A stretch of 64,000 nucleotides of DNA, taken from assembly GCA_038496445.1 (NCBI GenBank), contig JALMLS010000196.1, forward strand, positions 1 through 64,000, read 5' to 3'. The notes beneath the pieces were generated by a model. That model was not told where the DNA came from and ran no database searches. It was given only the letters and a program-made list of their open reading frames with translations. Each line of letters opens with the position of its first letter. Position 1 is the first letter of the stretch. A program made the translations under genes and the position numbers. The stretch comes from Trichosphaerium sp. ATCC 40318 (Eukaryota; Protista; Tubulinea). Of the stretch, positions 12,815-17,186 are shown in pieces.

Positions 12815-15800
12815 TTACATTACATTACATCTTTTCTTTAATCCAGTAGATCCTTGCTTAGCCTTTGCTCTTTTTTCAGCTGCTTTGAAATCTTTTACTT
12901 TATTCTTGTATCCTTCAGGATCAAGCTTCTGTTCGAGTGTTTCTTCCAACAGGAAGATAGTCTCAGGCGTTTTAACAAAAATCTTTGTATTACCATAAGC
13001 TATTTCATCACTTGCGAAGCTAAGCTTCCACTTGCCTTTTTAAACAATCAGTATGAGAGTAAAATACAATGAATTGATAAAACGTCAAGTTCATGACACG
13101 TACTAGATGCAAGTTGTGAAAAGAACTGTTTACACCCATCAGCGGTATCAGCACAATTGAAGTCATCAAGAATTGGCGTAAAACGGCGCAAGAAAACACT
13201 AAGAAAAGGTTAAGATGACCCAAAAAAATATGGATTTGGATTCTTTATCTTTGTTTATTGCTTACTTGAAGAAATGACGGTAAGCGTATCCAGCACGTTT
13301 AACTCTGACGTTTTGTAGTAGACCCAAGTACTTTACTTGATGCTTGACACGACCAGTGTCAAATGAAAAAGCTTGTTTGTTGTCATTAGACTTCATACAA
13401 CGGACGTAGTGAGGCTTTAAGTACAAAGTTAGACAGCTCTATTACTTTTTTTGATGAGATAGAACGTACTGTGCACTTGTTGAGCTTGTCCATAAGCATT
13501 CCTGCTGATTGTCTTATCTTCATACCAGATGTTACAGGCGATTTTTTATCTATACAGACCGTCAGAGCCATTCGAAAGAAAGAAACAAAAGGGTAAGACT
13601 ATCAAAAAAAAGTTGTTCGTTTACCGTTTTGAATATCTTCTGGGAATAAACCTGCGATGAAAGCATTTTTTGAAGTTTGTAGGCAAGCTACAAGTGAAGA
13701 GTATAGATTATCATAATTCTTTGTACAAAAATCAACTACATCGTATCTCACAGAACCTAACATGAGCGTTAGTTTATCGACCAACGAGATGTCACAATAA
13801 TAAATTCATGATACATACCTGCATAATGCTTTACTGTAAATCTCATGGCACTAGCGTCAACCTCTTGAGGTTGCTGTTTTGCAGCTAGAATAAAGGTTAG
13901 TCGAAGAGTAAAACAAAGGACTTAAAGGATTTTTGTTGTTGTACCTAAAGCATCAGCAAGGTTGGCAGGTGCGGCTCCCTCTTCTTCGTCATCGAGAATA
14001 GGCACTAAATTTATATTAGAGCAACCATTAGTGATACCTTTAACTACATACTATTTTTAAGGTCCAAGTATTGGTTTCCTTTCTGTACTTTACGAACACG
14101 TTCCATGAACTTTACATCAAGGACAGCCTAGTGAGAATACACGTCAGAAAAGTATGACTCAAAAAGAAGAATCACCAAAACTTACTCCTCCGTGAGAATG
14201 CATTGTCTTGCATGTATCATCTAATAATCTGAATATACCAGGTGGATTCTTTCCTTCAATCAAATCAACAACAACTTTGTTGTCAAAAAATTTAACATCT
14301 TTCCACTAAACACATAGATTGTTAGTGTATTCAACACGTGAGTTTAAAACAAACATCATACCTGCATTCCTTCGTCATGGTACTCTTTTTGTTCTCCTTT
14401 TACAGTCAAGTCAATAAATATTTGTTGAAGGCGTTCATTGACATAGTTAATGCAAAACTAAATGGCTAAGTAAGTAAAGAAAAAATATGACAAAGCGTTT
14501 TAGTATTACCTGCTCAAAGCCATTTTCTTCAAAAATCTCAAACCCATAGATATCTAATACGCCGATACTACGTCCAGACATAGTAATCGGTGCTGTATAA
14601 GGCATAGAAGATTTTGGAGGTGCTCCAGATGATCCCATAGCACTCATTGGTGGAGGACCTCCAGTAGCTCTTGGTACTATATAAAAATGTTAGTACTAAG
14701 CTGTGTATACAGAACATAAAATTTACGCACTTTGTGGAGGACCGCCAAAACCACGACCCATACCTCTACCACGGCCCATGCCTCTTCCTCTACCACGTCC
14801 GCGGCCACCGCGACCTCTGCCACGTCCGCCACGACCGCCACGGCCACCACGTCCGCCACGACCCATACCGCGACCTCTTCCTCGGCCACCTCGACCTCGG
14901 CCTCTACCGCGTCCTCCACCACCCATTGCCAGTGGTTGAGACATAGGCGGAGGTGGACCATTATTGGAGTCGCCTGCAATTGAAGATGCTTTAAAGCTTG
15001 AACTACTCTTTTTTCCAGCGAGAGCGCCGTTTATATGAGCTACTAGCCAATCGAATATACGAGAGTATATTGCCTTTGCTAAGGCATCTCTAATAGTCGC
15101 AGCTTGTTCAGGATTCTGTGGGACAGGATACATTGATCTAAATACTTAAGCACGTGGACAAGAAAATAGATTATAACAAGAATAGGAATTTACTTTGTAC
15201 CTTCGAGCTGAACCAGTTTGAATGACACGGTATGTCAAAGCATGTTGGAGGTTTGAAGCCTCTACATCGAACAATTGAGCAACAAAATTGAGTTGATCTA
15301 TTACGCGTAAGTGGTAAGTAGTACAAGTGACGTTGTACCAATGTTTGAAACTTGAGCAGGTTCTTCACCATGAAAGTTAATATTACCGAGATGAAGTACT
15401 CCAGCTAGTAATTGAAAGCATAGCTGACGCTCTTGGTCGGAAACTTGAATTGTTTCGAATGCTTCCATGACCTCGTGGAATTCTTTACTGTCATCCTTAT
15501 TTGGAACATTTGTACATCCACTTTGAGATAAGTAGTGGAAGCTTGATGGGCCTCCTTGAAGTTTAAACTTCGACTTCCAATCTTGTGGAGCTGCAGTCAC
15601 CAATTGGTAGAAAATATGGAAATTTCTCTCGCCCTTGGCCTTAGGAATAGGTGGTAAGAACATTGCTTGTCTTAATGATAAAATGTTCAAGTTTAAAAGT
15701 TTTTCCTGTTTTCTATTTTTAGCATCGTACTTGATAAGCAACACGTGTTTGCTCCAATAAAAAGTTTGTAATTTGTCCTCCACATGGTTCTCCCTATTTT

Positions 15801-17186
15801 TATTTTAATCAAAACGGTAAGATGATATCTTTAACAAACCTTTTCATTAAATGCAATCTCTAGGTACTTCCCGAAGCGGCTTGAGTTGTCATTCCGCACA
15901 GTCTTGGCATTACCAAAGGATTCAAGAAGAGGATTTGTAGACATAATAACAGCCTTAACGCGTTGTGTATCACCACTGTCACCAGAAACCGCTGAAATGT
16001 AATTCAAGATCTGTAAAAAAAAAAATACATAAACATTCAAATTGAAAAGAAAAAAAACGTTTGAACAAGTTCTTTTCACCCAAAACAGAGTTAAAAAAAT
16101 TAATATGTATTGATAAATGGTTAACCATCTCATGTCATCACGTGATAACGTTATAAAGTTCGAAAACAGAAAATACAAAAAAAATCACAATAAAAATGGC
16201 GAACGCACTTGTTTCGCTGCCTCTGTTTTACCAGCTCCAGATTCTCCACCTAAAAAATTCTTTTGTGAAAAAAAACCCAAAAAGAATTGATTAAAAGGTT
16301 GTTATCGTCATACTTATTATAACTGCCTGTCCACAACGTTCGTTAATCATATGCCGGTAAGTACGTTCAGCCAATTGATAAATGTGGGGCGTGGTACCGC
16401 CTATCGGTGAATCAAAAAATACAGAATTGAAAACGATCACATTACAGTAGTAATGATAATCGGGAACGTACCTGAATTGCTAGTGAGGTACATGTCCACA
16501 TGTTCTTTGCCATAAATTGGCAAAAATTTGTAAGGGTTCACCTAGCGATAGTATAAGGTAGAGAAAGGGTGCGCAGGACGTACGCATATCAATACATCGC
16601 CAATGTTGGTATAAATCTGTTGACGATCAAAACGAGCGCCTAGCTGCTTGGCCAAGCCTGAGTTTGAGGGACTGCTGCACATAACAAGGTCATCGACGCC
16701 CTAATAGCAAATTACATAACGGTTCTAGCGTGGTAATGCAACGACAGCACCACAGAGTGTGGCGCGCAAACTAGGGTACTACAAGATTGGTGCTACAAAA
16801 CTACAGAATTTTGCAGTACAATAGGCAAGCCCGCGTACTGCAAACACGATAGAGTGGAAGCACACGCAATGTCGTTTTCCAGAATTTTAAAGCGACAGAG
16901 AAAACAGCTTGCAAGCAAAAGAATGCGCGAAAATATAGCGTACCGATGTTCTCAAGCGAAGAAGCATTGTGGCGATTGTTGTTTTGATTTAGAAATAACA
17001 CGACAAATAAGGGTCATTGCCTTAATACCAATTAAAAACCTTGTAGTAAAGGTAACGCGAATACACAGTATCCAGTCTACGTTGCAAATAAGCTTTATAC
17101 CTTGCAAGAAGATTATTCAACGATTTGTAATTGAAATTACCTGCAACGCTGTATGAGATGTCAAATATGCGTCGTACTTGCGTCAT
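12815..17186 (-). CDS. myoK: Class I myosin, myosin K-type (no neck/tail, Gly/Pro/Arg insert, C-terminal CaaX)
   Basis: GVDDLV, P-loop [52 protein letters not shown]-site RRSMY; ends [56 protein letters not shown], closely resembling Dictyostelium MyoK as I recall it; exon 1 (MTQ, 17186-17178) is tentative. Confidence 0.88.

Follow-up and report, generated by a model that had tools for sequence, protein, structure and literature searches.

MyoK of Dictyostelium is the textbook case of a tail function moved into the motor domain of a myosin, and it has always been described as an insertion in loop 1. Its insert, which resembles the tail homology 2 (TH2) region of other class I myosins, binds actin and profilin. 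The insert measures about 130 residues and lies in loop 1 (Kollmar 2006, PMC1634994); the position in loop 1 had also been stated in a preliminary description of the locus studied here, and a loop 1 insert was likewise seen in the orthologues of D. purpureum, Acytostelium, and Tieghemostelium. In PMC3708727 the insert is called ‘TH2-like’ and binds Abp1 directly, and PakB phosphorylates the TEDS site of MyoK. We analyzed a stretch of 64,000 nt from Trichosphaerium sp. ATCC 40318 (GenBank assembly GCA_038496445.1, contig JALMLS010000196.1, positions 1 to 64,000), referred to here as the window. On its minus strand (12815..16967) the window carries the gene of a tail-less class I myosin whose long insert, rich in glycine, proline, and arginine (G/P/R), lies in the HO-linker of the transducer instead of loop 1. 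The HO-linker form as a whole appears to be an undescribed sister variant of the MyoK family, the MyoK type itself being known.

The gene model was obtained by assembling exons through GT-AG splicing from the list of minus-strand open reading frames (ORFs), in which the myosin segments are split by short introns. It consists of 21 GT-AG exons with 879 codons and a stop codon (12815..12817); all features given below lie on the minus strand. The exons tested matched the Pfam family Myosin_head (PF00063) with E-values of 1.7e-26, 1.7e-22, and 9e-10, and the closest PDB matches were the class I proteins Myo1c, myosin I, and MyoE. The P-loop GESGAGKT (residues 101–108, 16224..16247), switch I, switch II (DIYGFE), and the TEDS-site serine were all intact. 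This serine, S325 in RRSMY (15134..15136), was aligned with the MyoK-type rows, 17 of the 18 listed having S or T at the position (the exception is P0155). The start in exon 1 was backed by N-terminal homology, with MxxRLxxxGVDDL in the relatives.

The chain ends 41 residues past the converter, that is, past the last motor residues. No IQ motif (IQxxxRG) was found in the spliced protein, and the C-terminal exon gave no Pfam match, neither to TH1 nor to another tail domain. A polybasic KKR and the CaaX box CNVM (12818..12838) close the protein, and the alignment of the relatives’ tails stops at the same CaaX. The tail aligned residue by residue with the D. purpureum MyoK orthologue (...LKPKCIIQ) and with three further tail-less CaaX relatives, and a CaaX ending was present in 49 of the 52 tail-less relatives listed. 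The splice model therefore agrees with the neckless, tailless CaaX myosin I ending in KKRCNVM that the preliminary description had proposed, and its coordinates and motifs were correct on the minus strand. Loop 1 (residues 118–132, 15954..15998) runs uninterrupted in exon 6. The distance from the P-loop to NPLLE was 30 residues, which equals the value in insert-free myosins, so the loop 1 described earlier as short is at baseline. By these sequence features the protein is a class I motor of the MyoK type (tail-less, CaaX). The gene is a variant of this type and not canonical MyoK, as loop 1 holds no G/P/R insert.

The insert comprises 128 residues (366–493, 14576..15013). It is encoded by exon 10 (14731–15137) and exon 11 (14510–14676), with a 54 nt intron (14677–14730) inside. 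On one side it is bordered by the end of the HO helix (residues 354–363, 15020..15049) and on the other by strand beta5 and switch II (residues 496–506, 14537..14569), both of which were aligned to PDB myosins; the earlier placement of about 120 residues between a long helix and the switch II strand was thus accurate. The spacing from RDALAK to LDIYGFE was 154 residues, compared with 28–31 in the uninserted MyoK-type relatives, and RDALAK to switch II took 30–42 residues in the other class I myosins compared. From this spacing the insert amounts to about 125 residues. An ungapped alignment of the left flank reached residue 371 of Dictyostelium MyoE, 445 of Dictyostelium myosin II, and 455 of human beta-cardiac myosin (MYH7), in which the insert would start at about K450 (range about 447–450). 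The right flank aligned from MyoE 376 and from Dictyostelium myosin II 448. The two flanks are therefore separated by 4 residues in MyoE and 2 residues in Dictyostelium myosin II. By these alignments the insertion site is the transducer's HO-linker, which connects the HO helix with strand beta5.

The HO-linker is labelled K450–Y455 in human beta-cardiac myosin (PMC10153137), and the flexible elements of the transducer include both loop 1 and the HO-linker (PMC3151086). In human cardiac myosin a salt bridge of the loop 1 residue D208 with K450 was modelled or reported (bioRxiv 10.1101/2021.10.08.463735). From this bridge, and from the location of both loops in the transducer, we infer that the HO-linker insert would leave the motor near the same surface patch as a loop 1 insert. 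The insert had been described as lying next to switch II. This is true in the sequence, but in space the HO-linker is located at the far end of strand beta5.

An AlphaFold2 model was made for P0157, the closest relative (66% identical), from a 32-row alignment. The mean predicted local distance difference test score (pLDDT) was 78.7 and the predicted template modelling score was 0.74, with pLDDT of 80–95 in the motor. The model showed the HO helix at residues 333–363 and strand beta5 at 451–457. The insert between them (367–448) had pLDDT below 50 and no secondary structure. The structural check thus returned a disordered insert between the HO helix and beta5, and by homology to P0157 and by composition we take the insert of the window to be disordered as well.

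Homologues were searched with exon 8 alone against 1.8 billion representative sequences. The best identity was 52%, several matches aligned to the very C-terminus and ended in CaaX, and one match was the D. purpureum MyoK orthologue. With this query the window’s own protein was absent from the library. A word-index search with the C-terminal half of P0105, from which the 120 best matches were listed, gave about 60 tail-less CaaX myosins. Their named amoeba sources were Acytostelium, Tieghemostelium, Physarum, Balamuthia, Mastigamoeba, Mastigella, Vermistella, Luapelamoeba, Planoprotostelium, and Nematostelium, and Hondaea was a stramenopile source.

Both loops were measured in about 60 relatives, and three groups were distinguished. 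In group A (Dictyostelia, Balamuthia, Mastigamoeba, Mastigella, and environmental transcripts) loop 1, measured from the P-loop to NPLLE, was 89–200 residues long and the distance from RDALAK to switch II was 29 residues. In group B (the window, Planoprotostelium, Nematostelium, and about 10 environmental transcripts) the values were 30–31 and 78–157 residues, respectively. Group C, formed by stramenopile sequences, and the separate sequence P0171 were at baseline in both loops. No sequence with both inserts was seen among the relatives where both sites were readable. Likewise, no proteome showed both insert types among the 120 best matches listed, in which Planoprotostelium had the HO-linker type only and D. 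purpureum, Acytostelium, Tieghemostelium, and Balamuthia had the loop 1 type only. The second-site insert of the window is real, and it is not unique to this organism.

The HO-linker group was defined by a baseline loop 1, at least 50 residues between the HO helix and beta5, and a MyoK tail. All three features were found in the window, P0173, P0267, P0151–P0153, P0155–P0157, and P0159. The HO-linker insert was also visible in four incomplete sequences, in which not all features could be read: P0105 and P0166 do not include loop 1, P0160 breaks off ahead of the CaaX, and P0002 is a fragment that does not reach the tail. Motor identity to P0157 across the group was 55–73%. Several group B sequences were transcript contigs of 2.7–3.0 kb that barely exceeded their ORFs of 834–836 residues, and the insert is therefore part of the mature mRNA. 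Transcript-derived relatives, including the Nematostelium Trinity contig, had inserts of 85–143 residues at the HO-linker site.

The phylogeny was calculated with IQ-TREE from 42 rows and 717 columns, and both insert regions were excised before alignment. The tail-less CaaX MyoK-type clade had a support of 100/100 and included the window, in line with the grouping claimed in the preliminary description, and the insert sites could be mapped on the tree. The nearest tree row to the window was P0157, and the sister of the clade was long-tailed myosin I. The loop 1 group, together with the partial sequences falling in it, was supported with 98/100, and the window stood outside this subclade, which holds the dictyostelids. 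The stramenopile group (100/100) was placed inside the MyoK-type clade. The HO-linker group formed one side of a branch at 68/71 only, and the relationships among the loop 1, HO-linker, and stramenopile groups were weakly supported. The tree omitted P0187, a chimeric transcript whose N-terminal half is foreign, the N-terminal fusions P0191 and P0270, and P0166 and P0180, for which the longer P0267 and P0268 were used. Also omitted were the near-duplicates P0153 and P0178, the additional stramenopile rows P0198 and P0225, P0255, which had been placed among the outgroup in a quick tree, several short partials, and the outgroup pair P0201/P0204. When Planoprotostelium and Nematostelium were forced together with Dictyostelia, Physarum, and Archamoebae, excluding Balamuthia, the arrangement was rejected by the approximately unbiased (AU) test with p-AU of 1.4e-4 and 4e-5; the groups for this test were named after the tree had been seen. 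In view of this rejection, a recent hop within one evosean orthologue is not shown by the gene tree. Old paralogy, independent gain, and accelerated evolution after relocation are all compatible with it.

Low-share contigs from two public sequencing runs matched the gene with few differences or none. Spliced contigs skipped the introns 14306–14361, 14458–14509, and 15640–15730 exactly as modelled, and the contigs therefore derive from RNA. The gene is expressed. A 151 nt contig covered 14745–14895 within the arginine-glycine (RG) tract, and its run also had a spliced contig of this gene. No joint skipping the RG tract was reported among the RNA contigs of the gene. The exon check by RNA, proposed earlier, thus succeeded for three introns and for part of the RG tract. 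Coverage stopped short of exon 1, exons 14–17, and the intron within the insert; the first exon and this intron were modelled from the reading frame, the GT-AG consensus, and N-terminal homology.

The insert of the window contained 33% G, 12% P, and 17% R and had a net charge of +25, compared with at most +13 in the relatives. Its core (residues 396–453, 14750..14923) consists of 58 residues of G, R, and M alone (34 G, 21 R, and 3 M), and with 21 Arg it qualifies as a clustered RGG/RG repeat. A PPPP (residues 385–388, 14945..14956) lies on the N-terminal side of the core and a PPP (residues 467–469, 14648..14656) on its C-terminal side, and the insert holds a proline-free stretch of 64 residues. 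RG/GR dipeptides reached 33 per 100 residues, against 19 or fewer in every relative. The window protein is the extreme, most RG-rich member of the HO-linker group, and the purer RG/RGG tract noted before was borne out. A scan of the window found no other RG tracts. At the DNA level the tract shows units of 27 and 60 nt repeated imperfectly in tandem, which points to growth by slippage. The inserts of groups A and B were alike in composition, with mostly about 20–55% G, 13–27% P, and 8–18% R. An RGG-PPP alternation recurred in both groups, from which P0105, P0159, and the fragment P0002 departed; the inserts of P0159 and P0002 were K-rich, and those of P0151 and P0105 were Q-rich. The number of 5-mers common to loop 1 and HO-linker inserts exceeded that of shuffles with the same composition (for example, 12 compared with 2.5).

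These data bear differently on the possible explanations of the tract itself. The tract could be an artefact, intronic or removed as an exitron and thus absent from the protein. All reading frames are open across it, so an open frame proves little, and it contains many GT and AG dinucleotides. However, conserved motor sequence in the same frame flanks the tract on either side within exon 10, the RNA contig passes through it unskipped, and the transcript-derived relatives keep their inserts at the same site, which makes an artefact hardly credible. Neutral expansion by slippage of a low-complexity sequence in an insertion-tolerant loop, without specific function, would fit the tandem DNA units and the wide variation of the relatives’ inserts in length (52–131 residues) and flavour. 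It is unlikely, as every member of the HO-linker group has its insert at the HO-linker despite the divergence of the motors, the cationic, G/P-rich composition is kept in nearly all members (least in P0105), and the two insert types exclude each other, the loop 1 type having binding functions that are documented in Dictyostelium (PMC3708727). The pure RG/RGG core could also be a methyl-arginine, RNA-binding, or condensate element, a partner class that is absent from MyoK. The purity of the core, its dipeptide density, and the proline-free stretch speak for such an element, and a PDB search matched the tract to the GR tails of Sm D1 (E = 3e-5). This match is compositional only, no RRM, KH, or similar RNA-binding domain was found in the window protein, a nuclear context is absent, and the proline-interleaved tracts of the relatives are typical of TH2 regions that bind actin, profilin, and SH3 domains. 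We therefore regard this explanation as quite improbable. In its strongest form, the RG core would have made the MyoK insert a module of the methyl-arginine, RNA, or condensate type on the transducer of a membrane-anchored motor, which seems to us very improbable. If it were true, arginine methylation or RNA/Tudor partners would be coupled to motor kinetics or to cortical localisation; we know of no myosin that couples its motor to such partners.

The origin of the second site allows two explanations, relocation and independent evolution, and the earlier idea that one or the other took place is supported. One orthologous gene may be involved, whose G/P/R module disappeared from loop 1 and arose in the adjacent HO-linker, or the other way round, on the branch towards Variosea-like amoebae. 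For this speak the occurrence of only one type per sampled genome or proteome among the matches listed, the motif grammar that both insert types share beyond composition, and the tree, in which each insert site corresponds to a single group. The HO-linker group was not nested among the evosean loop 1 sequences, however, and the AU rejection, with its groups named post hoc, goes against it; similarity of low-complexity sequence is also no proof of homology. We consider relocation plausible but short of probable. Alternatively, the two types may be old paralogues, or the insert may have been gained twice, independently, starting from an insert-less ancestor like P0171 or the stramenopile members; each lineage would then have taken a TH2-like G/P/R tract into another permissive loop, with selection being the same in both. 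This agrees with the existence of such insert-less MyoK-type members and with the rejection of a species-tree-like arrangement. G/P/R tracts are also present in the tails of long-tailed myosin I (for example, at the C-terminus of P0009), so this composition arises repeatedly in the class. On the other hand, no sampled organism had both types among the matches listed, and the relationships among the groups are weakly supported. Paralogy or independent gain is a serious candidate that we would not yet call the probable one.

For the function of the protein, we consider it likely that the gene encodes an expressed, membrane-anchored MyoK-type motor in which the HO-linker insert serves as a second binding site for actin or other ligands. 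The protein would act as a single motor domain without an IQ lever arm or a tail. Its CNVM box is probably farnesylated, and the adjacent basic residues may help to hold the motor at the inner face of the membrane. The disordered, strongly cationic G/R/P insert would emerge from the HO-linker joining helix HO to beta5 and, by analogy with MyoK, could bind actin filaments at a second site independently of ATP, and possibly also profilin or SH3 partners. A single chain anchored at the membrane would in this way connect the membrane with cortical actin, and phosphorylation of the TEDS site would regulate this link. With the prolines reduced to two short runs around the G/R/M core, binding would be driven mainly by charge; that interleaved prolines were lost suggests a shift to purely electrostatic binding. 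As the insert sits in the transducer, it may also tune the nucleotide kinetics.

Several points weigh against this view of a second actin or ligand site. The RGG-PPP alternation was mostly lost in the window insert and its k-mer sharing with the relatives was at chance level, and for these reasons its partner binding may differ from theirs. The function assigned to the HO-linker insert is drawn by analogy from Dictyostelium MyoK, and the nearness of the loop 1 and HO-linker bases comes from the literature on myosin II. Prenylation is predicted from the motif alone. The junction of the internal intron of the insert, as well as a minor splice form that may leave the tract out, lies outside the RNA contig coverage.

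Our literature search for an HO-linker insert position, or for a loop 1/HO-linker dichotomy in MyoK-type myosins, found no paper in the library searched. Kollmar and Muhlhausen 2017 and Odronitz and Kollmar 2007 (PMC2375034) treat insertions in general and leave the HO-linker site unmentioned. The position is thus, by this search, not documented, although the sequences are public and one of them is named ‘myosin IK’. ‘Myosin Ik’ of Sebe-Pedros et al. 2014 (PMC3942036) is a holozoan subclass that is unrelated to Dictyostelium MyoK. Related amoebae show a second, mutually exclusive solution to the displacement of a tail function, with the same kind of tract in the HO-linker, a six-residue connector in muscle myosin that is a cardiomyopathy hot spot. 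The two forms provide a natural swap experiment on whether the function of the module depends only on its exit point on the motor surface. They also bear on how an insertion of 50–130 residues in a transducer loop affects ADP release and ATP-induced detachment. The insert site may further help to sort amoebozoan lineages. The interest is for specialists and is not field-changing.

Some further observations were made on the relatives. P0171 is an environmental MyoK-type sequence of 724 residues that ends in KPKCLIQ. It has an insert in neither loop, its branching was weakly placed, and it is possibly an insert-less amoebozoan form. The stramenopile sequences P0193–P0199, P0202, P0203, P0225, and P0236 (Hondaea and relatives) were tail-less and insert-free, with a CaaX that often had a double Cys. 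In Luapelamoeba hula (P0191/P0270) the MyoK-type motor was fused to an SH2 and Cbl-like N-terminal part, and the Mastigamoeba balamuthi gene model P0183 combined it with an FGE-sulfatase domain; these fusions may be chimeras of assembly or gene models. P0091, a long-tailed class I myosin found with exon 8, contained several hundred inserted residues immediately behind switch II (...GFEQFC to INYVNE). This insertion begins just past a Cys and ends in ...VHN before a Cys, and it looks like an intein in a myosin motor. The ‘myosin IK’ model of Planoprotostelium fungivorum (MDYQ01000033.1, L001 3319–3742) has four introns of 38–64 nt in the repetitive insert, and the exons after the first three repeat introns each start with a GRG-PPP unit. 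Four such short introns called inside a repeat make the public insert length doubtful, and the public protein may misstate it. None of the four repeat introns of this model, whose intron calls are doubtful, matched the position of the window’s insert intron.

Separate from the insert, the window myosin has about 30 extra, mostly acidic residues (613–646) in the loop directly before the HYAG strand, which we take to be the equivalent of the loop 3 region of muscle myosin. The distance from switch II to HYAG was 145 residues, compared with 111–119 in the relatives. The segment (13844..14052) runs from the last base of exon 14 through exon 15 (13945–14004) to the start of exon 16 (13819–13884), with two introns between. 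Exon 15 is 60 nt long and frame-neutral, and it could therefore be a cassette exon.

The nearest described system is Dictyostelium MyoK (Myo1G in Kollmar’s nomenclature) with its dictyostelid orthologues, such as that of D. purpureum (XP_003283373, P0023). The window myosin shares with it a class I motor without IQ motif or tail, an S/T at the TEDS site, one long disordered G/P/R insert in the motor, and membership of the same 100/100 clade. The roughly 40 residues after the converter, which end in a basic stretch and the CaaX, can be aligned position by position. The motors were about 50–55% identical. The MyoK-type proteins of dictyostelids differ in having 164–200 residues from the P-loop to NPLLE (30 in the window) and a baseline HO-linker region of 29 residues (154 in the window). 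Their inserts contain about 24% Pro and many PPP runs, whereas the window insert has half as much, with none in the core.

‘Myosin IK’ of Planoprotostelium fungivorum (P0173, NCBI) and the transcript of Nematostelium gracile (P0267) share with the window the HO-linker site, the baseline loop 1, the tail, the CaaX, and the tree group. From RDALAK to switch II, P0173 measures 157 residues, its exact insert length being uncertain as the protein is a gene prediction, and P0267 measures 85 residues. Their inserts show a regular RGG-PPP pattern with 24–25% Pro and a charge of +5 to +13, compared with the near-pure RG and higher charge of the window.

RGG/GAR boxes, such as the C-terminal GR repeats of Sm D1, are alike in G/R composition, but the window tract has no RNA-binding context. 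The TH2 region (GPA/GPQ) of long-tailed amoeboid myosin I is likewise rich in G, P, A, and R, disordered, and binds actin in an ATP-insensitive manner; a tail with such a composition occurs in P0009. It lies in the tail between TH1 and SH3, whereas the window insert lies inside the motor. Arthropods' variant C myosins of class I (Odronitz and Kollmar 2007, PMC2375034) have a loop 1 insertion of about 300 residues, which is similarly tolerated in a transducer loop; they differ from the window in loop, lineage, and tail architecture. The HO-linker of myosin II, which in human beta-cardiac myosin spans K450–Y455 and contains the cardiomyopathy site R453C, occupies the same position by the ungapped alignment of the HO helix and is the same transducer connector, with six residues in myosin II and about 130 in the window.

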